A DNA stretch of 64,000 nucleotides from Podarcis erhardii (Eukaryota), in assembly GCA_964252035.1 (NCBI GenBank), contig OZ176201.1. The stretch is one strand, 5' to 3'. This document shows, piece by piece, positions 28,131-47,949 of this stretch. Position numbers and translations under genes: made by a program. Numbering within the stretch: the stretch's first letter is position 1; every line of letters begins with the position of its first letter. The notes beneath the pieces are model-generated. The model did not search any database. It was not told the DNA's origin and saw only the letters and a list, made by a program, of their open reading frames with translations.

Positions 28131-28793
28131 CTTAGAACTGCAACCTTAAATGCTCCACTTTGTTTATGCAGTGCAAAGGGGAGATCCCTGCTCTCAACGT
28201 TTTTATTTTTGTCATTATAATCAGGGTGACAGCACTGGCATAGCATAGCCAGGATTTATAGGGGGAGGGAGGATCAATGTTTTGGGGGGCAGAACTGAGC
28301 TATCTTTGATGTGTTTGGTCAGTTAGTTAAGCATTTTTATTTATTTACTTTATGGTAGGGTGCTGCCCACCTTGCCCACCCTTCACTACACCCAGGGGTG
28401 GCAGCTTCCTTGTGGCCTACTAAATGCTCATCATTGAAGACAATTTCTCTTAAGGCTAGGATTACTGTCCATGCAGTCAGAGGTCGCGTGTAAAGTCACA
28501 TTTCTTTGCACTCAACCTCCCTTGAGTGACAACGACATACTTCGTCCTTGTGATCGGGTCAGGGGGATCCATCCATGCACCTCACTCAACAGCAGCACTG
28601 GCTAGTGATGCCTTAGTCAAATGTGTTTTTGCCCCCTTTACATTCCCCCGATGGCTTCCCTTGGTGAGCCACCCTCCCCCTCCCGCACCTTAGCTGTCTG
28701 CACTAGGAGGGGTCCCTACTCTCTTCTTCCGAGCAGATGATGCCTTGGCTGAGATCGGTCCCTCACTCCCTGCCCCGAGGGCTGCCAGGAGCC

Positions 28794-28997
28794 CAGTGGC
28801 GTAGCGTGGGGGGTGCAGGGGGGGGGGCGGCCGCACCGGGCGCAACATCTGGGGTTAGGGCAAATCCACAGGTTAGGGGGCGCAAATCCACGGGTTAGGG
28901 GGCGCAAATCCACGGGTTAGGGGGCGCAAATCCACAGGTTAGGGGGCGCAAATTACTTGCCTTGCCCCGGGTGCTGACAACCCACGCTACGCCACTG
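28794..28997. mobile_element. 204-bp hAT-like (Tip100-type ends) MITE with an internal 22-bp tandem array
   Basis: 17-bp perfect TIR CAGTGGCGTAGCGTGGG. Perfect 8-bp TSD CAGGAGCC at 28786-28793 and 28998-29005. Units GGTTAGGGGGCGCAAATCCACR start at 28871, 28893 and 28915, with partial units on both sides. Confidence 0.95.
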
Positions 28998-30964
28998 CAG
29001 GAGCCGGCTCCTCCTCTCTCTGGGCTAGCAGGTGTGTCTCCCGGCAACCCTCGGAGGGGCTTGCCACGGAGGCCATGCTCCCCCGCCACCTCCTCGGTCC
29101 CACTGGTCTCTTTCGCAAGAGCCAGTAGGTAAGGCACGAACTGCCCTTTCAAGGGTGTCTTCCCTCCCCCTCCCCCCTCCTTTCCACTTTTGTGCTGCCG
29201 TTCCTGCTTCCTCCTTTCTTTCGGGTCAGAAGGAGGGTTTCTCCCGCTAGCTCTCCTAACGATAAGGTACCATTGCCCTCCAGCTCCTCCGAGGGCTTTG
29301 GAGCAGAGGCAAGGCTTGTGCTCCCAAACAGACGGCCCTCGTCTCCTCTTCCTGCCACCTTCAGGCTGCCTCTCCCCCCTCCCCATCTTGCAACCCCAGG
29401 CTAGTGGTGGGCGCTCTTTCCCGGCTCCCTTTTGCGGATCCCAGCCCCGCCGCCTTCCTGCTTGCATCCGGGGTTGCCGGCGCTGCAGATGCGCTCAGGG
29501 GCAGAAGCAGCCTCGGTTTTCTGCCAGATCCGGCGAGGAGGGCGCAGCCCGGCCCTGCGGTTGGCAAAAGCCACGTATAAGTTTGAAAGTCATGCCGCCC
29601 GTCGCCATGGCTAATCTTTGATCACCCTAACGCACCGACAAAGGCGTGCTGGCATTTAAAGGAACCCTGGCCCTCGCAAGTTTCAAGCCGTCTGTTCAGC
29701 GACAGCACAGAGAGGCGTTAACCCTGGATAGGATTCATAAGTAAATTGTTAAGCTGCCAACGGCGATTTCCGTCTTTGGTACGTATGTGTAAACAGGTGC
29801 CTTTTCGTGTTGCGGAGACATGTGGGGGGCATGAGAGGTCGGTCCATAAGGGAATGTTTCGTTAGCTGAAAAGTACGGTTATCGCCAAGTGGGACCAAAC
29901 ACACCCACACAGCAAAGGAGCAGCCCTTTGGTTTTCTGTTGATGCAACATCCATATGGAGGTCGTTGGGTCTGGCCTGTTCTGTGGGTTTACAGAGCGCT
30001 CGCTGGTGCTTAGCCAAATCCTTTCTGTCTCATTTGGTTTGCACCTTCTTGCAGTAAAAATTGGCACCTGGAAGAGATCGACAGTCTACCCCCAACGAGT
30101 CTTTTCTTCTTCACTCTTTCCGCACTCTCCCCAAAGTCCCCGCAGGAGAGGAAGCTTAGTATTTCCAGCAAAATGGCTTTTATCGAGGTATTCTCAAGAT
30201 CCTTGCAGTTTAAACTTCCTCATTGCCTCGAGCAGAGGCCGAAGGAGGAGGAGAAACATGAACTGTCATGGAAGGCGAAACGTACAACATGCTCCTGTGG
30301 GGTGACCTGAAATGAAAACTGTTCTTTAAAAAAGCATTAAAAAAAGCATTTTCTACCTGTCTCACGACTTAGACTAGGGTCAACCTCTCTCTTAACTTCG
30401 ATGCAGAGTTCTTCGAATACGTGGTCGCCTATATATGTTTAAGCGACCTATTCGAATAAAAACTCTGCATCTATATGTGCTGGTAAGTAAACCTTCACCT
30501 GTCTCTTTCTCTCTCACACACATACTTAATACATATATAAATATATATATATTTATGCATATATGTGTGTGTGATGCAGCTTTAATTTCCAGCACATAAA
30601 ACAAGCCAATCTTCAGTGAGCCCTTTAACCAATGATAAAACCTTAACATCTGCCATATTCAAAAATGGCTGTTTAAGCGAGGCCAACTATAATTTCACCT
30701 GTCACGGGAGTTTCCCCGACCTAAACCAACATGTCCGCCTTGGTTCGCTCTGAGGAAAAGAAAACTGCCCAAAACAAAGATGGCCACCGCGCCGAACAAT
30801 TTCTGCCCTCATCCAAAAGGGCTGCCGACTCCCGCAGTCCCTCTTCTGGCTTAGGGAGAGGCGGCCTAGCGGCTGAGGAGGAGAGGGAGGGGCGTGGCCG
30901 CTGCCAGAGAAGGGAGCGAGAGGGAGAGACGCGGGGGGGGGAGAGGCGTGGCTTCTCTGAACCG

Positions 30965-31503
30965 GAAGTGCCGCGCTGCCTGTCTCCAGCTGGTTGTCAT
31001 TTCGATCGGAGGCTCGGTCCTGTGGAGACGACGACGACGACGGTGGCGGCGGCGAAGGCGGCTGAGGCGGCCGGGCCGGAGTGGCGAACCGGCGGATCGA
31101 CAGAGTAGCCCAGCGCCTCGTGACTAAACAGGAGCCCCCCCCCCGGTCCACCCGCCCGAGAAACAGTTGTGTTACATGAGGGGAAAAGAACGACGCCGGG
31201 AGGAGCCGAGGCGGAGGAGAAGCAGCCGCAGCCTCAGCAGCAGCCGCCGCAGCCCCGGAGCATCAGCAGCGGGAGGAAAGGCAGGACCCCTGGGAGCCGC
31301 CACCGCCACCGCCGCCTCCCCCCTCGCCGCCTCCTCCTCCACCCTCCGGAGCCAGGCTTGATATTGCCCCTCCCTGCTCTTTCGCCACCCAGCGATCCTC
31401 GTGACCCTCCCTCCCTTGAGAAACCGGCTCCCATGGGGGAGAGAGGAGCCCGGCCCCCCGCCAGCGCCATCCCCTCCCCGCCGGAGACTGCGCCCCTCCT
31501 GAG
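30965..31503 (+). other. CPEB4: Putative non-coding first exon of CPEB4 (5'UTR), spliced to an acceptor at 32779/32780 or read through as a retained intron
   Basis: Donor-like GAG|GTAAAA at 31503/31504. Strong acceptor TTTTGTTTTTTCTTTCCAG|G ending at 32779, 27 nt before the ATG. Start position inferred. Confidence 0.5.
31176..31361 (+). other. Upstream ORF 1 in the CPEB4 leader (61 aa)
   Basis: ATG at 31176, stop ending at 31361 (frame of track ORF 31167..31361). Regulatory role inferred from known uORF control of mammalian CPEB4. Confidence 0.45.
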
Positions 31504-32806
31504 GTAAAAGTCCTTCTGCGGGGGTGGGGGTGAAATCCCTGCTCTCTTTCATTCTCTCCCCCCCCCTTCCGAGGGAGCAAGGGCGGCATCAGCCCTATAT
31601 ATTCCTCCTCACCTTCCCCCACCTTCGAAAGAGGTTCGTCTCTCTTCTCTCCAACCCTCCCCACCCCACCCCCCGCTTTCTAAATATTCTCAGTCCAAGG
31701 ATCTGAGCCCGATCTCTCCCCCCGCCCCGCTGTCGCACAATAAATTATTCTGCTGATGGCTTTAAAATGCCTAAACTCCGCTCGCCAGATATACTTATTT
31801 CAACCCCCCCCCACCCCGCCCCCCCCTCCAAACACTTGACTGCTGATTTTTCTGAGGTGAAAATTTTCCTCTGCAGGCAGCCAGGATTCATCTGAAGGAC
31901 ACACAAATATCGGATCATAATAGGAAGCGAGCTCGGAAAAGCAGCAACCAGGAACCCACCCAACCAGCGGCAGCAACAACAAGAATCCACCCTCCTCCTG
32001 CACAACTCAGTCCGTACACATACACACAACACGCAGTGAATGCAGATATCTAGAGATTAAAACAGGAACAAATCCTCGCACCCTCCCCTGCTTTATATGG
32101 AAAGGACTTGTCAGAAGGGCATCCGCATAGAGCATATTATACATATAGTCCTACAAGGCAAAGGCAGTAGCAGCACAGGTTGGGGGGGTGGGGAAAGCTC
32201 TCCTGTACAACTTGCTCCACCATTGAAATCTTGAGGTAAAAATTTCAGATTTTTAGCAGCAAAGACTGTTAGAATAGATCACAGATATATATTAGATTAT
32301 ATAGAATTTATTAAATTATTCCAGATTTAAATATATTTTTGGAGCTGTGAAGGAGTGAGGAGCACCAGATGTCTTGGTATTGTTTCCATTAATGTGTACA
32401 TGGGCAGGTTGAAGCGGCTGTTAAGGCAAAAAAGTTTTTTAAAAATCTTTTTAAAAAAGAATTCCCAGGAGCTTTCTTTCATCCCCACTTCATTCTTGTG
32501 CATTTCCTTTTAGAAAAAAGGGAAACCTCTTATTTTGTTAACCAAAGATTTACTTTCTATTCCTTCTGGATATTTGAAGGAAGTGAACACAAGTCTATCC
32601 ATGTCAATATTTTAAGTGATCTCATTAATAAGATTCCAGGAATAATATCCAAATCAGATATCTCAAGTGGGTAGGTGGGAAAGAAGGGGGAGGTGAAAGA
32701 TCTGTAGTAATTTTCAATAATCTTGCTTTAGTAGAAGAACAAAAACATTTTAAAGTTTTGTTTTGTTTTTTCTTTCCAGGCGGAATTAAAATCCTAAATA
32801 AAATAA

Positions 32807-33931
32807 ATGGGGGATTACGGGTTTGGCGTGTTAGTGCAAAACAACACCGGGAATAAGTCAGCTTTTCCAGTCAGATTTCATCCACATCTGCAGCCTCCGC
32901 ACCACCATCAAAATGCAACCCCCAGCCCCGCTGCTTTTATAAATAACACAGCTGCCAATGGCAGTAGTGCTGGGTCAGCTTGGCTCTTTCCTGCTCCAGC
33001 TGCCCATAACATTCAGGATGAGATTCTGGGGTCTGAAAAATCTAAAACTCAGCAACAGGAAAAGCAAGACTCCCTAGAAAAACAGCAGCTTTCCCCTAGT
33101 CAAAGTCAGGAAGCAGGCATGCTGCCTGAATCAGAGAAATCTAAATCTGAAGAAAACCAGGGGGATAATTCTTCCGAGAACGGCAATGGGAAGGAGAAAA
33201 TAAGAATAGAATCGCCAGTGTTAACAGGATTTGATTATCAAGAGGCTACAGGGCTGGGTACTTCAAGCCAGCCCTTGACATCTACAGCATCTTCTCTGAC
33301 TGGTTTCAGTAACTGGTCAGCAGCTATAGCTCCTTCTTCTTCAACAATAATCAATGAAGATGCGAGTTTCTTCCATCAGGGAGGGGTTCCTCCTGCTTCA
33401 GCTAATAATGGTGCTCTGCTGTTTCAGAATTTTCCACATCATGTCAGTCCTGGCTTTGGGGGTAGTTTTTCCCCTCAGATTGGACCCCTCTCTCAGCACC
33501 ACCCTCATCACCCCCATTTTCAGCACCATCACAATCAGCATCAACAACAGAGAAGGTCTCCTGCAAGCCCTCATCCACCTCCATTTACGCATAGAAATGC
33601 TGCTTTTAATCAACTGCCTCATCTTGCTAATAATCTTAACAAACCACCTTCTCCATGGAGCAGCTACCAAAGCCCATCACCTACACCGTCTTCTTCATGG
33701 AGTCCCGGTGGCGGTGGTGGATATGGTGGGTGGGGAGGGTCCCAAGGGCGAGACCACCGCAGGGGACTGAATGGAGGAATCACACCCCTGAACTCCATCT
33801 CACCCCTGAAGAAGAATTTCCCAAGTAATCATATCCAGTTGCAGAAGTATGCACGGCCCAGCTCCGCTTTTGCTCCAAAATCTTGGATGGAAGACAGTTT
33901 GAACAGAGCTGACAATATCTTTCCTTTTCAG
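32807..33931 (+). CDS. CPEB4: CPEB4 first coding exon (N-terminal low-complexity domain, 375 codons)
   Basis: MGDYGFGVLVQNNTGNKSAFPVRFHPHLQPPHHHQ...KSWMEDSLNRADNIFPFQ is near-identical to mammalian CPEB4 as recalled. Ends at phase-0 donor CAG|GTGAGA; 1125 nt. Confidence 0.98.
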
Positions 33932-36900
33932 GTGAGATTATTCTACTAATACTAAATAGAATATTCATAAATGTGTTAAATGGTTGCAGAAATAGCAAGA
34001 CTCTGTTGTTTTTGCATGGTTTCTATTCTTAGAGCTGAGGACTTAATTTTAAAAATACACCTCTTGTATATAGTTTATCCTTTGACATTTCAGGCTTCAT
34101 CTCTGAATCATGAATGTTCCGTATAGTGTTTGTCAGAGAAGTAACTATAGGCTAAGAGTGCATCTGTTATGTAGGTAGTTTGCTGTCAAGTTAATGCACC
34201 TGATCAATAAAACAGTTGCAAGAGTGATTATTGAAATAATTCTTTTCTGGGGTGGATAAGTCCTAAAAAAATTGAGCAGCTGAAATGGAATCCCCCCCTT
34301 TTTTTACCATATGGCAATAGCATTATGTTTTCAGTACACAAGTATTGGATCCTAAAACTGGACTATCAGAAAATATGCCTATGGCTTTGTGAAATTTCTC
34401 CGTTCAATAGGAATGCATCTGTGTTTTTTTTAAAAAAATAGTCTACTGGGATTTACAGTTTTCTTACAAAATGTGGAGCTGATCTCCTCCAGCAAGGGCA
34501 ATAGATTTTGGTAGATTATAAGTCATTACTAAAAATAGATATACACTCGCTTCAGACATTGGCCTATGCTGTTCAAATGAGGCCATATGTTATCAGGAAA
34601 GAGGCTGTGTGCTTAAAATGTATTGGGAATTTGTCTCCAGTTTCTGAAGGTTAATTACTATTAAAAACAGCCAGCCATGTAATCAGTGAAAATCTGGACA
34701 ATGGCAATTTTATTTTTTATTTTGGAATTTGTGATTAAGCTTGATGGGTTTAAATTTTTTTTATAAAGAGTATTTTGAAACCTAAGGATTCATGGGTGGT
34801 GTGTGAAAAAGCAAAGATTGCAAAATTTTTGTTGCATTTCTAGGCATGGTATAAGCGAAAAACATGGTGTGACCTAGTTTTGTTGTAATTTGGGATAGGA
34901 AAACCGGTAGATCAGAAGAAACCTATACTTGACTTAAATACAGTCTTAAAGATCTAAATATATTTTATAATCTAGTTATACTGCACAGAGAAGTGGAAGT
35001 TCTTGTATTATCTTGCATGCAGTTCTCTGGTAAAAATACTATCATTAATGAGACTTTTTAGTTCATGCTGCATAGCCAGAAGTCTTGAAATAATTTTTCA
35101 GACTGGAAGTGTATAAAAGGCTCGTGTAGAAGACCAAATTTAACCTTGGAAACCATTAGCACTAGCACTGTCACTGCAGCAAGCTCTGACTTCCTGTTTA
35201 ATTCATTCTGTACCGTGACAACGTAGCTACACTGTGACAGAATAAGACCGTGTCCTTACTCCTGTAGTTAAGGCCTCAAATCTATGAATGTCAGAGATGG
35301 AAATTTTCTGTTGGTGTACTGGCACACCATTTTTGGGTTGCTGCTCTTGGGGCTATGGTCTGTATCTTGACACATGCTTTTCTTATATGGTATTGTGGTC
35401 AAAAATAATTTGTGGCAGTAGGTTGTTGTCTGTTTACTTAAGCAGTAAACAGAAGGCCATGGCAAGACCAAGTCTGATGTTTTCTTGTGCCTAGCAAAAG
35501 AAAGGTATTTTAATGAAATGGTTTCCGGTTTGTCACTGCTTGAGTTCTGTGATGAGCAAGACAAGAGCAGGACTTCAAAAGAAGAACCTAGCACTCAAGC
35601 AAATCCTCTTATGAATTTTAAAATAATCTTGGACATTTACCTTTTCTAGTATAAAATCCATATTGCTTTTTTTCTTTGCACAAATAACTAAAAAATAAAT
35701 GAGTTGGTCCTCTTTGTTCAAGTAAGCATGCAAGGTATATGCAATTCAAAACAAAATGTGCAATATAAAGTGTGTTTGCAAAGCTTTACATAAATGAAAG
35801 GCCCTAAATGCATCAAATCAGGGCTGTCTCTGGACCTATAATTGCCAGAATCTTCTTGGGCCCATGTTTAGTATCACTACACACAAACTATCTTGGCAGC
35901 TATAACAAAATTGCTTAAATAGATGGCAGTGTTACTTGATCGTGACTAACCCATTCACTGGGTGACCTCTTGCTATTTTAACATATCCATACACAAGTAG
36001 CTTCCTAATATAAGTCAGCTCTTCTATAAAGAGGGGTTTTGCAATGTTTATATAAATATAATAAGTGCAGAATCTCTTTTTAGTCTCATCTGAATGCCTT
36101 TTGAAATACAAAATCCATATCCTTGAGGGATTTTCTCTTATAGCGAAAGATCCTCTGTTAGAAGTATAGAGCTGGCTTTCTTTTTGAAGGATGTTGGCTT
36201 TAATGTTTATGTAGATATTTTACAGGAACGTAGTTTAATTATATATATTCACCTATAGTGCAGTTCATTATGACATTATGTATAAATCTAGGGTACTGTA
36301 AACAGGAGGATGGTAACTGGCTGTTAACATGCACTCTGGATAATAGTCCAGTGGTCAGAGTGTTAGGCTCGGGTCTCTTAATTATAAGCACATAGGCCTA
36401 AATTCTTCTGCCACAAATTAGGAATAAGGATTTGATGCTTTAAGGGCACTTGAGAACAAATCAAATTCTACCTACCTTGAACAGTACAGCAGTACATAAG
36501 GACCAAGTGCTTGACTGTTGATATTAATGTGATGCCAAAATGTATGTCCGGTGACATAATCCAGTCCTGCCCCTAGTAACAGCTGTTGGCACTGCTGCAT
36601 CACTGTTTTCCTGGATGGGATGCTGCATTGCTGTATGAGAGTTCCTGTACTGTGCTGCTGGGGAGGAGATCGGAACACAACCAGTTCCACAATGCAGCAT
36701 TTTTGAACTTTGGAGGGATTCCTGGAAGTGTGAAAGCTCATACAATGTATGCAACTAATTATGATTCTTGGGGATATCCCTGGTTGGATATCAAGGATAT
36801 CCCTAGTGCCATCTTATTAGGGTAGGACGCCATTATGTCTGCAGCAGTGTAAAGCAACGTTTGGTCTGCTTCAACTGAAGCGGACCTATAGACTCGGGTT

Positions 36901-40310: not shown

Positions 40311-42856
40311 TCTGTGCACACCCACACAATTTTAAAATGGAAATTATGGATTGGTACCAGTGTGTGGAGCAAGAACTCCTGCAAATTTGGCTCAGTTGTG
40401 CAATCTCTGCATTAAAATGTGTCCCCTTGTCCTTTTGGAGGCTGATAAGCAATGGCACATGCTTCAAAATGATTTCAACCTTGAGGAAAGACACCAACCA
40501 TTTTTTTCTCTTTCAAATGAAGTTATAGCACAGTGCAGAATATTAACTGACATCCTTTAGTGTATATTAAGCAAATATCTGATGATTACTACCATCAGTG
40601 TTTAGTTTTACAAAAATCTTTTTTAAACCGTGAGGTTTAATTAATTACTTAGAAGTGTCTTGCATCTTGACTAAATGTACAAAATGCATGATGATACTGG
40701 TATGTCTCTGAGAAACAGCTGCTATTTCTTTATCGGTTGACAGCCTTCTATTCTTTAGTGGTAGAAAGCAGTTATTTAGTAATGTACCGGTAATCTTTAT
40801 TAGTCAGGCTCTTATTGGCACAATTACTTGCTTGTTCTTTGTAGACTTTCCAATTCAGTATCCTTTGAACCACCTGTTAAAGCAACACTACAGATACATT
40901 ATAGCAAACTGCAGTAAATAAACACAAGTGTTCATGCTTTATTGTGCTGCTGATTACCTGTTTACTTATTTATTATGCCCATATAGTCATCAGACTTGAT
41001 TAATTCATTCATATAGGTATTTTGAGGTTAGCACAGTGACTTGATGTGGTGTCCAGTGGGATATTGGTGGAGGGCAATGGCTATTGTTTTCATCCCCCCA
41101 AATAGAGCCAATTTGTGTTTATTTTAAAGGGAAGCTATGCAACCACTCCTCATATTTGACAAACATTGCATCTGTTTTTGTACTTCCCCATCCACACCAG
41201 AATACAAACAACCCCAGAAGAAATGGTCCTTTGGATGGAGAAAACTGGCTCAGTTTCCAGGGGACCTGGGCAAGAGTACACTGTTCCTATTATATAGAAA
41301 AAGAAGTAGGAGCCATGTTGTATGGTAACCCTCTTGTACTGTACCACTTCAGAATGAACACGTGAAGCTCTGCATTGGCATATTAAGCCCTATCTACTCC
41401 AGCTAGCAACAGCTCTCCTAGGGTTAAAAAAAATGGTGCCCTACCCTTGAGCACCCCTCCCGCAATGAAGCAAACATTTGCTTCACAGAGATAAATGGAT
41501 TTTGTTTTTGAGTGTTAAAACGTGAGACAGAAAGTAGAATTGCAACTGACTTGCACATCTCTTCTTTGTACCCTTAGTGGTTGATTTTGAGTTTTTTTGT
41601 TTTGTTTTATTCCGTACTTGTACCTCTAGTGAAACTGTTTGATAGCCAGTTAACATGATTAAGCATGGTTTTGCCAAAGCACAAATCATTTTCTGCGCTA
41701 GGCATGGGACAAGTGGAAGTATGGATGAGGCTTTAGGCTCCTAGTTGCATGCTTATCTTCAGACATACTCCTTCTAGTACTTCTAATAGCAGGGACTATG
41801 TTGCTTCACACTTGCAAAGGATGGGTCCATCCATATGCAGAGTGAGTGGTCATCCTTTGCAAGTGTGAAGCAACATTTCTTAAATTGGGTAGCAGGGACA
41901 TACTATATTCTATTTCTTCTTGGCCATAAGGCATGTTTTATTTCAGAACTGTGCATATGGCAGCTTAATACATTTTTCCTATAAAGCTATCCTGGCTTAA
42001 ATTTCAAGATACTGATTAAATATGAAGAATCCTCCTGGAAAGATGTGAAGTGATCTGTCTATACAGAATGTTAAGAAATTGTTATGGAAGAATACCAGTA
42101 ACTCTAGACATGTCAGCCTTCCTTTGACAAGAAAAGAAAATAGGTTGAGATCTTCCTAGAGGTGGGAGTGGCAGAATAGTTCAGACTATGATGAGATTAT
42201 GTGCTTTAAATTAAATAAGAAGGAACAGAGTGAAGTCAAAAGTCTGTAAAAATAGACAGTGCCCTATTAGTTTTCCTGTAAGTCATGTAGAGGGAACCTG
42301 CACAGCACCCATCTTCTTACCCAATCATATCCATATGTAAGTTAGGTTTGGTGAAAGGCTGCTGAGTTCATCTCATAGGAGTTTCTTGTATCTCCTAAGA
42401 ATGGTCAGACTCTCATTGGTTTTTAAATATATGTCTGCTGAAACGGGATGTAAGAAATGCTCACTTGTCAAAGCTATGCTTTCCTGGATCTCCCTGTGTT
42501 TTTACACAGTGACTTGAATGTCTTCATAACTTTTCTTGATACATGAATACAGATACTGTTGCAAGATGTGGCAGGTCTAAAACTGGCATCATACCTACTT
42601 GATGTTCACAACTCATTAATTATGACAACTGGATGACTAATTCCAAAGAGCTTCAAACCCTAATGCTTGATGTTCAAAATTAAATAGGTTTTTTTTTACT
42701 CAATCACGTGAGTTTTGGCTAGTGCAGAAACTTGCAAGTGCTGTCATTTTGAATACTATTGTCAGTACCCTGGTTATATTAAATGGGAGGGTAATGTCCG
42801 TCTCAGCCATGAGCTCTGCTGACCCATAGCAGAACCCATGAGTTCTCCACTGTACT

Positions 42857-44566
42857 TAGCATATATGATAAGAGTAAGTAGCGTTTTAACTAAAATGGAA
42901 AATGAGCATTCTAAAAATGTTCTTAAAATTTTGCATTGCCTTGGAATGTGGACCATGCTTTTATAGTCTCTCTTTGTTGTTTTGTGAGATAACTTGTTGC
43001 CTTTTTTTTTTTTACCATGGGTGAACTAAGGTTATCTTTCCTGGTTGAGAAGATGGTACCTGTGTAGGCAGTGGCGTAGCGTGGGTTGTCAGCACCCGGG
43101 GCAAGGCAAGTGATTTGCGCCCCCTAACCCGTGGATTTGCGCCCCCTAACCCTAACCCCCAGATGTTGCGCCCCCCCTGCACCCCCCACGCTACGCCACT
43201 GCGGAGTCGTCCGCCATCCTGAGCCAGCGGACCGACCGATCGCTCGCCCGCCCGGAGCCGCTGCGGCCGGAGAGCTGCGCCCGATCGCTCTGCGCCCTCT
43301 GCCCGCCGCTGGCTCTAGGCCAAACCCCGGGCCCGACTCGGGAAGCAAATACCGCGCATGAGAGGAAAAGATGCGCAAACCCCCGGCGCAGGCGCCCCGC
43401 TTGTTGACACGGGAGGGGAGGGGGGGAGAGGAAACGCTGCTGGTGCCGCTGCTCCTCGGCAGCGGCTCCTCCTCTTAGCCCGCCCTGCTTACATTTGCGC
43501 CAATCCCCACCCACTAAAGCCTTCGCGCCTCCCAATGGGAAGCCTTGCCGGGCGGCGGCCTCTGCTGCCTGAGAGTTCTAAAGCCACGCCCACTTTCCCA
43601 GAGACTGGCTGTTCTGAGGGATCCAGGGCAGGACCGGCGTGCGCGCGCGCTTCTTGCTGCCCGGGCGCTTGCTCTAATCCCGCCTTCCCTGGGAGGGGAT
43701 ATATGCATATATGATAAGAGTAATATAGCATATATGATAAGAGTAAGTAGCGTTTTAACTAAAATGGAAAATGAGCATTCTAAAAATGTTCTTAAAATTT
43801 TGCATTGCCTTGGAATGTGGACCATGCTTTTATAGTCTCTCTTTGTTGTTTTGTGAGATAACTTGTTGCCTTTTTTTTTTTTACCATGGGTGAACTAAGG
43901 TTATCTTTCCTGGTTGAGAAGATGGTACCTGTGTAGGCAGTGGCGTAGCGTGGGTTGTCAGCACCCGGGGCAAGGCAAGTGATTTGCGCCCCCTAACCCG
44001 TGGATTTGCGCCCCCTAACCCTAACCCCCAGATGTTGCGCCCCCCCTGCACCCCCCACGCTACGCCACTGCGGAGTCGTCCGCCATCCTGAGCCAGCAGA
44101 CCGACCGATCGCTCGCCCGCCCGGAGCCGCTGCGGCCGGAGAGCTGCGCCCGATCGCTCTGCGCCCTCTGCCCGCCGCTGGCTCTAGGCCAAACCCCGGG
44201 CCCGACTCGGGAAGCAAATACCGCGCATGAGAGGAAAAGATGCGCAAACCCCCGGCGCAGGCGCCCCGCTTGTTGACACGGGAGGGGAGGGGGGGAGAGG
44301 AAACGCTGCTGGTGCCGCTGCTCCTCGGCAGCGGCTCCTCCTCTTAGCCCGCCCTGCTTACATTTGCGCCAATCCCCACCCACTAAAGCCTTCGCGCCTC
44401 CCAATGGGAAGCCTTGCCGGGCGGCGGCCTCTGCTGCCTGAGAGTTCTAAAGCCACGCCCACTTTCCCAGAGACTGGCTGTTCTGAGGGATCCAGGGCAG
44501 GGCCGGCGTGCGCGCGCGCTTCTTGCTGCCCGGGCGCTTGCTCTAATCCCGCCTTCCCTGGGAGGG
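42857..44566. repeat. Tandem duplication: 841-bp copies 42857-43697 and 43726-44566 separated by a 28-bp junction insert
   Basis: Period is 869 bp, and identical ORFs in the track are offset by 869. I found only two substitutions (43229 G/44098 A; 43633 A/44502 G). Confidence 0.97.
43069..43201. mobile_element. 133-bp MITE of the 28794 family in opposite orientation (duplicated at 43938-44070)
   Basis: CAGTGGCGTAGCGTGGG TIRs at both ends and fewer 22-bp units. Its right flank (CGGAGTCG) does not match its left flank (TGTGTAGG). Confidence 0.92.
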
Positions 44567-45315
44567 AGGGTCGGCGGTGGCCGCGAGCGTCTGGGGTGGG
44601 GCGCGCGCTGGCTCTCCCTGGCGGCCCCCGCGCCTGGCGTTCTATCAGCGCGCCCGCCCGCCTCCTCTCTCTTTCCCCACCCATCCTCCACGTGCTGCGC
44701 TCTAACCCGGAGTTAGAAGGGAATTAGAACACGCCCCCCGTGTGGGGTGGTTTTTTTTTTTGCTGCTTCTTCTTTTTTTAGGGCTTTAAAGTTATGCTTA
44801 ATATCTGCAACACATTGAGTGCTCGTCCAGAAAAGTTGAGACTCACCCTCCAGTGCTATGCTCATGAGGCGCTTTCCTTCTCGTTGCTTATGACTTCGTA
44901 GCAGCGGGGGAACCGCCAAAAAAGCCCCTTCGGGCGCGCGGGAGGAGCGAGCCGCCCGCTTTCCCGCCCTCGCCGGCCTCCTGGGGCGCACGCAGCGCTC
45001 GCGCCCTCCGCAGCCCGCCCAAACGCGCGCCAATGCCGGGCGGGCGACGCGCCCCCTCCGGGAAGCGCGATGTAGGCGCCGCTCCTGCACCCGACGGCCT
45101 TTTCTGCAGGGCTTCTAGCTGCAAGCGAGTGTGCGCGCAGAAGGCGGCGCCTGGGCTGGGGAGCGCGCAGCCTCGTCCTTTCCATCGCAGCCAGCACTGT
45201 GAGAGAGAGAGTGAGCCACCAGGACCAGGTAGGGGCAGAGAGCTCCGAGTGCGCCCCCAAAAATGTTGCGCCCGGTGCGGCTGGCACCCCTTGCACCCCC
45301 CACGCTACGCCACTG
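43938..45315. mobile_element. Composite hAT-like element (1378 bp): MITE + ~1.2 kb GC-rich cargo + extra outer terminus
   Basis: 8-bp TSD TGTGTAGG before the left TIR (43930-43937, also 43061-43068) and after the outer TIR CCCACGCTACGCCACTG (45316-45323). Confidence 0.9.
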
Positions 45316-47949
45316 TGTGTAGGCTCCTCCATTTGAGTGACAGGTATTAGGGACCAATAGAGCTCTCCTCTATTTTTCACAAGTTTTTGACTTCCTTTTG
45401 TTCCTTCTTTCTGACTTTAGAACATGCTGATCACAGACTAGTCAAAGTCCAAAATTGTACACTAAGCCACATTACCTTCTCTAATGGGAACATAAGCGTT
45501 GATGTTCCATTGGCTTGCTTTCCAGCTATGAATTCACTTTTAAGTATGAACATATCTAAAGGAAATGACCTCCTTGTAGGTCTGTTAGGATCCTGTAATG
45601 CTAAAAATATGTTTAGCTCTATTCACCATTGGACTTTCCCAAAACGTTCCTTATACGCAATTGCAGTATATTGGCCTGTGTGCATGTTTCTTCTATGGCT
45701 TTAAAAAAAAAAAATTGGCATCATTGAACTTGCCCATAAAGGGCCTAGTGATTAAGTTGCAAAACACAAGTTAATCTCTCTAGATAACCTGAAATATTGT
45801 ATTTCTTCTGGAAGTTGTTTCTATGAGATGAGAGCAAAAGAATGTGTGTATAAAATAAGATAAATTCTTTTTACTTTAAGGTAGGCTATTTCAATCTGGG
45901 GTTTCAGCCTGCTTTGGGACTGGAAACAGCCTTTATCACTTTTGTGGATTATTTACATCAGAAGATAGAAGGTGGACTGTGTTCCTGTTGGTTCCTCTGG
46001 ACTTTTCAGTCACAATCAGTACCATTGACCAAGGGGGTAGGGCTTGGGTGCACTCTTAAGTAGGCTCTGCTTATTCCTTCTGAGACAGGGCTCAGAAAAT
46101 GATGCTGGGGCAGGTACTGTTCCTCCCTGTGGTGAGTTGCCTGCAGGGTTCTTTCCTTGTTCTGCTTAAGCATCTACATAAAAGCTCTGGGTGAACAGAC
46201 ACAGTTGAAGCTGAAGCTGGAAATCTCCAATTTTGAGATCTGGGCTATATAGTCATCAGTGTGCAGATACATAGACCTTCTCATTTTCATCTGATCCTAG
46301 GGAGACAGTAAGGAAATAAGGTGGTAAGAAATTGAGATGGATGTGCATTTTAAACTCGAAAACTGTGTATACTAGCAAAGCTCAGCATCAACAAGGTCTG
46401 TTGCTTCAAGCATTGACTTAACAATTTACTTTTCATCTTTTCCCTTGTTGGGGAGTAAAGCAAGTTTTGATGGAGAATTATATTTTAAAAATATAATTCT
46501 ACTATAGGATTGCCATGCTTTTATTACTTACCTGGCCTCTTGAAAATGGGTGTAAGAGATGAGCTGGTATTTAACTTGGCATGTCTCTACTGACTTTGGA
46601 AAATTACAGCTTGACCTCAAGGTTAGGGAGCAAAGAACTGCAAGCAGGGCTCGTGTGCATAGTTAAACAAAGCCTTGTTGCTAATCCCATGTCCCGAGTA
46701 AGTTCACAATAACTGTACTTTCTTTTAGGGCAGAAACATTTTTTTTAATTTTTTTTTAGGTAGGTGAGTTTAAATAGACTATCTGGGACTAATGTTATAC
46801 CCATTAAAACAACAATGAGAAATTTGAAATATAAAACAGTGAGCACATCTTAGCAGGCACGCCAACTCTTTGTTGGATAGTGTTGAGGGGGCCTGGTGCA
46901 TGTCACACGCATGTGATGTCATGCATGCTGCACTTTGCAGCACCAGTGGCTGGCTCCTCCAGAGTTTTCTGCCTCCTCCAGATTGACACAACGTTGAACA
47001 TTCTGTTTAGTTGGGTATTTGTTGTTTCGGTCAAGAGTGAACTATGAAAGTACTTGCTAAGTGATGGTTTTGGCTATTGTATGTGAGAAATACTTGGGAA
47101 GTGTGTTACAGATGACAACATGGTAATGCCTTCACTGCAAGTCATTGTGCCTCAGTTAAATATCTATGTACCGTAAATTCCATTGTTGGTCTCGCTACAG
47201 TAAATGGAATTTCAGTGTATGCAGTATTCTTGTTATCTGTAACACTAGGTAATGTGGAATACCAATATTTGAAGTAAGTAGAATTTCAAGACTTGCAGTT
47301 TTTATTGAACTGCATCTGACCAGAAACTACTGATAACTGTATAGCACAGAGCAAATGACATTATGTACTGCACTGCTGCATTTCAAGTAAATAGATGAGC
47401 TCTTTGGGCTTTAAATGCTAGGAGGATGGTTTTGAGATTATGGTCATAAAAAGTTGTTTGTAATATTTAAAAATGCTTCAGATTTAAAAAGAATTATTTA
47501 TACCTTTGTATAACATGCGGGGGGGGGGGGGGGATACAAGCATCAATATATCCTATCAGTAGAGTAAAAAAATAAAAGAAAAGGATAAGAAATGTAGGAG
47601 AGTAAAAATTTAGCTCAGTGAGAATGTTTCCCACTTGGACTATTTCACCACTTCGTTTATATCAATATGAGTGTTTGGAAATACATAACTAGTTATGTTT
47701 TACTCTAATTGCATAAAGAACTAAATATAATTGTTTTATGAAACTACTTTTACTGAGGCTTGAAGTCTGTGGTTTTAAATCAGCATTTGATGTATCAAGC
47801 TGATGAAATCTGGCAAACATGGCCTTGCATCAGATAGGGTTATATTTTTATTATTTTGTTTATTATTCTCATATTGTGATCCTACCTTCCAAACAGGACT
47901 GGTGGTAGCTCTTGACTGACTTAAATTTGCTTCAATATATTTTGGATAT

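Follow-up and report, generated by a model that had tools for sequence, protein, structure and literature searches.

The window analysed here is a stretch of 64,000 nt on contig OZ176201.1 of the Podarcis erhardii assembly GCA_964252035.1. It contains the 5' part of CPEB4 and, in the first intron of this gene, a 1378-nt unit that was inserted by cut-and-paste with an 8-nt duplication of its target. Its left end is that of one miniature inverted-repeat transposable element (MITE) and its right end that of a second one, and by contig depth it is present in many copies. The first coding exon of CPEB4 was recognized as an open reading frame (ORF) of 380 aa at 32807-33946 (+), with 93-97% identity to the corresponding exon in birds and mammals. 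The exon ends at about 33940, and the gene possesses its own CpG island at about 30701-31750. The position of this exon places the unit approximately 10 kb into intron 1, in agreement with an earlier note on this DNA, made from the sequence alone, which had assigned the element to a CPEB4 intron. The protein region encoded by exon 1 is disordered, and a comparison with the protein atlas was uninformative.

The element family is marked by a 17-nt terminus, CAGTGGCGTAGCGTGGG, with seven matches in the window compared to 0.04 expected. Three perfect copies belong to the unit, at 43938 (+), 44054-44070 (-) and 45299-45315 (-). The remaining matches fall into a plain family member of 204 nt (28794-28997) and into a duplicate of the 133-nt MITE at 43069-43201. 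The features of the unit, of its surroundings and of the plain member are listed below; terminal inverted repeat is abbreviated as TIR, target-site duplication as TSD, and the observed to expected ratio of CpG as CpG o/e.

42857-43697, plus strand: tandem duplicate of the left flank, the TSD, the first MITE (MITE-A) and the start of the cargo, equal to 43726-44566
43698-43725, unstranded: filler of 28 nt at the duplication junction, partly repeating the first letters of the duplicated segment
43930-43937, unstranded: left TSD TGTGTAGG; the empty-site joint leads from 43929 to 45316 with nine shared letters
43938-44070, plus strand: MITE-A, complete, 133 nt, with the left TIR at 43938-43954 and the right TIR at 44054-44070
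44071, unstranded: one C that separates the internal TIR from the cargo; homologues of three other species align from 44072
44072-44787, unstranded: cargo piece 1, 716 nt, GC 0.67, CpG o/e 0.87
44788-44791, unstranded: junction filler AAAG, which aligns to the homologues of neither piece
44792-45153, minus strand: cargo piece 2, at least 362 nt
45154-45204, unstranded: stretch between cargo homology and MITE homology; the alignment of organism C stops at 45153 and is followed by 51 unlike letters
45205-45315, plus strand: right part of a second family member, of the MITE-B subfamily, with its TIR at 45299-45315
45316-45323, unstranded: right TSD TGTGTAGG
28794-28997, minus strand: plain 204-nt member of the MITE family with its own 8-nt TSD GGCTCCTG at 28786-28793 and 28998-29005

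The two copies of TGTGTAGG bracket the whole unit of 1378 nt. The third terminus (45299-45315) is oriented as a right end with TGTGTAGG directly after it, whereas the inner MITE is followed by CGGAGTCG, and the 8-nt duplication therefore belongs to the unit and not to the MITE within it. A later nested insertion of the inner MITE was considered and rejected, because this MITE is not flanked by a separate TSD and because the whole unit is missing from the empty site described below. The TIRs of the unit are perfect over 17 nt and start with CAGTG, in conformity with the YARNG ends of hAT elements (PMC3014272). Duplications of 8 bp, as known from the hAT superfamily, are found both at the unit (TGTGTAGG) and at the 204-nt member (GGCTCCTG). 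The duplication and the CAGTG termini fit a putative non-autonomous element of the hAT superfamily; no transposase-like ORF near matching TIRs was found within the 64-kb window.

Contigs assembled from four public sequencing runs were aligned to positions 43726-46300 (2575 nt). One run is from the same species (organism A, run X1), two are DNA runs of related species (organism B, run X4, and organism C, run X5), and the last consists of RNA from a fourth species (organism H, run X15). In organism B, a contig of 2110 nt passes from 43726-43929 directly to 45316-46062. This joint omits 1386 nt, and the nine letters that fit both sides of it are one TGTGTAGG and a shared C. An identical joint is found in organism C, and the same joint is present in organism A at a depth of 74.9, with flanking contigs at 85-97. 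The right-flank contig of organism A starts exactly at 45316, as expected when filled and empty alleles are both present. From the empty site with a single TGTGTAGG in two relatives and in the same species, it follows that the unit arrived in one event, and that it is absent from the relatives and not fixed in its own species. The left-flank contig of organism A stops at 43925, which is 13 nt short of the expected branch point and would fit a single-nucleotide polymorphism at 43926 in the empty haplotype.

These observations agree with the central claims of the earlier note, namely that a complete 133-bp MITE lies at 43938-44070 (its 17-nt CAGTGGCGTAGCGTGGG inverted repeats are perfect), that the duplication flanks the whole unit and not the MITE, and that the moved unit used the outer end of the MITE together with the distal end and skipped the internal TIR, as the TSD and the empty site both indicate. 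The empty allele with one TGTGTAGG that it had foreseen was thus observed. Neither of the outcomes it had named as contrary, that is cargo at the orthologous intron position or an empty site without a single TGTGTAGG, was encountered. The same comparison bears on the view that the cargo is a CpG island native to the CPEB4 intron, for example an alternative promoter, that became bracketed by independent MITE insertions. The region 43951-45250 (GC 0.66, CpG o/e 0.88) is indeed the strongest CpG island in the window, but this view is refuted by the cargo-free intron with one TGTGTAGG in the relatives and in the same species, and is further opposed by the missing TSD of the inner MITE and by the multicopy state of the cargo. 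We regard its probability as negligible.

The depths of cargo contigs and of flanking contigs in the three DNA runs were as follows.

Run X1, organism A: cargo contigs 1247-2584, flank about 90, ratio about 13-27 times
Run X4, organism B: cargo contigs 85-146, flank 12, ratio about 7-12 times
Run X5, organism C: cargo contigs 54-145, flank 106-182, about one copy or less

An unbranched contig of organism A, with a depth of 2116, covers 44045-44197; it starts inside the internal right TIR and extends into the cargo. The same internal junction is therefore shared by practically all copies in this species, and it is the three-ended composite itself that multiplied. Judged from contig depth, about 20 sites in this species carry a copy of the composite. 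A variant without 45043-45105 (63 nt, with ACGC in place) accounts for about one third of the cargo depth, which denotes a composite family with substructure or subfamilies. The cargo contigs of organism A differ from the copy in the window at only three positions in about 994 nt (44098, 44571 and 44891), or approximately 0.3%. This small difference from the family, together with the perfect TIRs and TSD, shows that the insertion is very young.

The left part of the unit occurs twice. A segment of 841 nt, consisting of 212 nt of left flank, the TSD, MITE-A and the first 497 nt of the cargo, is tandemly duplicated at an offset of 869 with two mismatches (43229 and 43633). The duplicate contains flank, TSD, MITE and cargo together, and the duplication thus arose after the insertion. 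Its derivation as a product of alternative transposition was rejected, since neither breakpoint is at a TIR end. The unit reported by the earlier note is accordingly real, with the qualification that it is the second copy of a tandem duplication and that its flank, TSD, MITE and 497 nt of cargo are found twice.

A near-perfect duplication in the region could also be read as a sign of misassembly, in which a chimeric join of repeat-rich reads produced the three-ended unit, the tandem duplication or both. Short reads of the same species mostly show the site in its empty state, and no contig across the filled junctions was seen, which would suit such a join. On the other side, the contig with depth 2116 contains the internal junction independently in short reads, the right-flank contig starts exactly at 45316, a real transposition is in keeping with the perfect TSD and the exactness of the empty site, and the two duplicate copies differ at two positions, one of them matching the family majority. 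An assembly artefact is consequently very improbable in our estimate.

Comparison with plain members of the family clarifies the construction of the two ends. MITE-A carries two 22-nt subterminal repeats (43981-44021) and is without the GGTGCGGCCG segment, which most family members have, as shown by loose contig ends at 44042. The third end, about 110 nt in length (approximately 45205-45315), corresponds to the right half of a MITE subfamily. In many plain members, from all four runs, positions around 44000-44009 are joined directly to 45225-45229, often with GAGTGAG between the joined parts, and this motif matches 45209-45215. The third end therefore reaches inward to about 45205; the earlier note had correctly assigned it to the same family but had placed its inner limit at 45250. 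A GGTGCGGC segment is present in the third end, as in the 204-nt member, and is missing from MITE-A, on which basis the two right ends of the unit derive from different family members. Four to five 22-nt subterminal repeats are present in the 204-nt member itself, which is located at the 5' margin of the CpG-rich region that precedes CPEB4 exon 1. Apart from the family, a perfect 26-nt inverted repeat with a spacer of 27 nt was observed at 41798-41876, approximately 2 kb upstream of the composite.

The cargo was previously described as a single CpG-rich piece of about 1.18 kb, of which the CpG-richness stands and the unity does not. Homologues in organisms B, C and H all start aligning at 44072. 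Those of organisms C and H stop at 44787, where a 1705-nt contig of organism C goes on for 1450 unlike letters, and those of organisms B and C resume at 44792, preceded by 41-58 unlike letters. These alignment breaks, shared among three other species, indicate that the cargo is composed of at least two pieces (44072-44787 and 44792-45153) joined by AAAG. The whole region 44072-45204 shows no similarity to plain MITEs and is thus internal DNA of the unrelated kind by which Pack-TIR elements are defined. At the same time, the unit has ends from two distinct elements in direct orientation within one TSD, which is the arrangement of a two-element macrotransposon.

The cargo has a GC content of 0.67 and a CpG o/e of 0.91, compared to a CpG o/e of 0.15 in the flanks, and is a CpG island in composition (GC of at least 0.55, CpG o/e of at least 0.65 and length over 500 nt). 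All promoter-type motifs pointed out previously are present: CCAAT at 44369 and 44401 in piece 1 and a third at 45030, CACGTG at 44689, and GC boxes. On its minus strand, piece 2 is GC-rich with ATTGG and GC boxes, followed by ATGAGCATAGCACTGGAGG, GTGAGT and AT-rich DNA; the exon-like signal in this order, ATG AGC ATA GCA CTG GAG G before GTGAGT, lies at about 44864-44840 (-). From this order of signals we infer a pattern that may resemble a promoter with a first exon. In the RNA run of organism H, the depth is about 104 over 44242-44787, 3-5 over the intron and zero over 44844-45101. The same profile could arise from multicopy DNA or from intronic RNA. No protein homologue of the longest cargo ORF (44227-44724) was found by a word-indexed search or by an exhaustive HMMER search of 1.84 billion representatives, and neither a transposase ORF nor a hAT motif was detected in the cargo. 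A possible mir-185 gene was set aside as a probable chance match: it is the sole match to Rfam in 42500-46000, lies in GC-rich DNA at 44281-44357 and again in the duplicate at 43412-43488, and scores 27.3 bits, below the gathering score of 60.

For the origin of the cargo, the earlier note had offered a captured host promoter or the 5' promoter region of a larger hAT, and there are observations on either side. We give capture of host DNA about an even chance, and the cargo is only narrowly more likely to be derived from the host than from a transposon. A competing explanation, which we consider possible and hold with clearly less confidence, is that the cargo was originally internal to a longer element of the hAT family, whether autonomous or non-autonomous, and that a new left end came from a MITE or from recombination between elements. 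The composite would then be an ordinary non-autonomous hAT with an internal rearrangement. Mixed or other histories make up the remainder. A longer element would be in line with the multicopy state of the cargo in organisms A and B and with its lack of coding homology; recombination between elements is common among lizard hATs (PMC3014272), and the depth of about 100 in the RNA run of organism H does not exceed what numerous intronic copies would yield. Organism C speaks against such an element, since the cargo is at about single-copy depth there and each of the two pieces is in a contig of its own that continues into unlike DNA. The absence of a transposase ORF or hAT motif from the cargo also speaks against it, as does the likeness to the 5' end of a gene, given by the CpG-island character (CpG o/e 0.9) and the AT-rich, intron-like stretch with ATG...GTGAGT in piece 2.

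Several observations weigh against a composite with captured host DNA. A donor locus was not observed directly. Piece 1 of organism B falls into two lineages 5-7% apart, each of them multicopy (depths of 97 and 137 with a flank at 12), and this divergence exceeds the approximately 2% found between species in the flanks. The more diverged of these lineages is the one found in the RNA of organism H, with a contig of 2016 nt that extends 1860 nt beyond the left border of the cargo at 44072. A larger repeated unit would explain both the two lineages and the long contig, as the longer hAT element supposes. The exon-like signal of piece 2 comprises only seven codons and one splice motif, and this piece has zero depth in the RNA run. 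The depth of the empty allele in organism A is above the expectation for a simple heterozygote. Moreover, copy number is approximated only through contig word depth, and the TSDs of other copies, an autonomous partner and reads across the junctions of the filled allele were not seen.

With these points taken into account, we judge it moderately probable that a composite non-autonomous hAT element, built from MITE-A, two pieces of CpG-island-like DNA with their filler and the right part of a second family member, was recently inserted into CPEB4 intron 1 and is not yet fixed there. In its movement, a hAT transposase encoded elsewhere would recognize the outermost ends, pass over the internal right end and paste the 1378-nt unit with an 8-nt duplication of the target. 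The composite itself may have been born when DNA from several templates was joined in a single event. The likeliest route would be serial template switching in the repair or replication of a MITE, proceeding from the right half of MITE-B to piece 2, to piece 1 and to MITE-A, and annealing in the left half shared by the MITEs would resolve the repair. This route would account in one event for the truncated MITE-B, for the two pieces with their 4-nt filler and for the complete MITE-A. Alternatively, two MITEs may have been located beside the same CpG-rich DNA and then mobilised jointly as a macrotransposon, which would require a later loss of the left half of MITE-B. After the insertion, the left 841 nt, made of flank and element, was tandemly duplicated.

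A broader proposal, which we put forward only tentatively and consider rather doubtful, is that an active hAT MITE family in this lizard lineage repeatedly builds and amplifies composites with host CpG-island or first-exon DNA. The internal TIR would then be a structural fossil of the birth of a Pack element, through two-element or template-switch capture at preferred promoter targets, and the copies might bring new islands, unmethylated and competent as promoters, into introns like the first one of CPEB4. The sole other family member in the window is located at the edge of the CpG-rich region at the 5' end of CPEB4, a single observation in favour of promoter-proximal targets.

Multicopy DNA transposons with cargo are rare in vertebrates (4 of the 370 Pack-TIRs surveyed), and none has been reported as still segregating. 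The present element adds a lizard case that is multicopy and still segregating, with a large cargo in two pieces and an internal terminus, still in place, that testifies to its composite origin. With a divergence of about 0.3% it is young; it has about 20 copies, part of its own species lacks it, and its seams are visible in the whole MITE, the two-piece cargo with 4-nt filler and the foreign right end. These properties make it a good natural case for testing how such elements are formed, and it could also be used to test whether they spread working CpG-island promoters into genes.

Among known systems, plant Pack-MULEs and Pack-CACTA elements carry and amplify GC-rich 5' fragments of genes, often several in each element. 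They have long TIRs and TSDs of 9-11 nt or 3 nt and belong to other superfamilies, and their likeness to the composite is one of analogy only. Macrotransposons and composite insertions of the maize Ac/fAc elements were reportedly described by Huang and Dooner in 2008. As hAT macrotransposons, the maize Ac/fAc elements (PMC9910405) are closer in kind. In them, the outer ends of two hATs, one complete and one fractured, lie in direct orientation and carry the intervening DNA within a single 8-nt TSD, as in the composite. In contrast to them, the composite has MITEs of approximately 100-200 nt as its ends, is 1.4 kb instead of 10-28 kb in size, has been amplified to many copies in a vertebrate, and has no two-element donor locus that was seen.

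Termini of the YARNG type and 8-nt TSDs are also known from the non-autonomous hobo/hAT elements of Anolis carolinensis (Novick et al. 2011, PMC3014272), and for lizard hATs both the uptake of extraneous DNA and recombination between elements have been described as routes of diversification (PMC3014272). The composite shares with them the lizard host, the 8-nt TSD, the YARNG ends and the filler DNA. It differs from them in that the filler of Anolis elements often consists of other transposable elements, whereas the cargo here is CpG-island-like and shows no hallmark of a transposable element. A full-text search of a set of papers for the TIR sequence returned no match, and the likeness to Anolis families is one of description; a literature search for a lizard hAT with a CpG island returned nothing specific.

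The closest parallels are found among the Pack-TIRs of animals, for which a survey of 100 genomes listed 370 elements, 208 of them hAT (Tan et al. 2021, PMC8277862). Multicopy elements numbered only four, one from alligator and three from Xenopus, among them hAT-N8_XT with a cargo from a 5' untranslated region, and template switching (FoSTeST) with multi-fragment fillers is the published model for such multicopy elements (PMC8277862). The earlier note had proposed a vertebrate analogue of Pack-MULEs; the multicopy, Pack-like carrier of cargo is sustained by our analysis, while its novelty is not, as animal examples were already published (PMC8277862). Cargo-carrying hATs have thus already been described in vertebrates, and the composite is a further and not an unprecedented case. 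As in Pack-hAT-N8_XT of Xenopus tropicalis (PMC8277862), hAT ends and an 8-nt TSD surround unrelated GC-rich DNA that resembles the 5' end of a gene, and as in the animal Pack-hATs, the element is multicopy, the orthologous site of relatives lacks the insertion, and the junctions are compatible with template switching (FoSTeST). Unlike in the animal Pack-TIRs, no parental copy was seen, the cargo is about 1.1 kb in two pieces compared to a median of 224 nt, and a whole MITE with an internal TIR is retained. The composite is further distinguished from the frog example, which has three copies, by its approximately 20 copies, and from the animal Pack-TIRs by an insertion that is still polymorphic.

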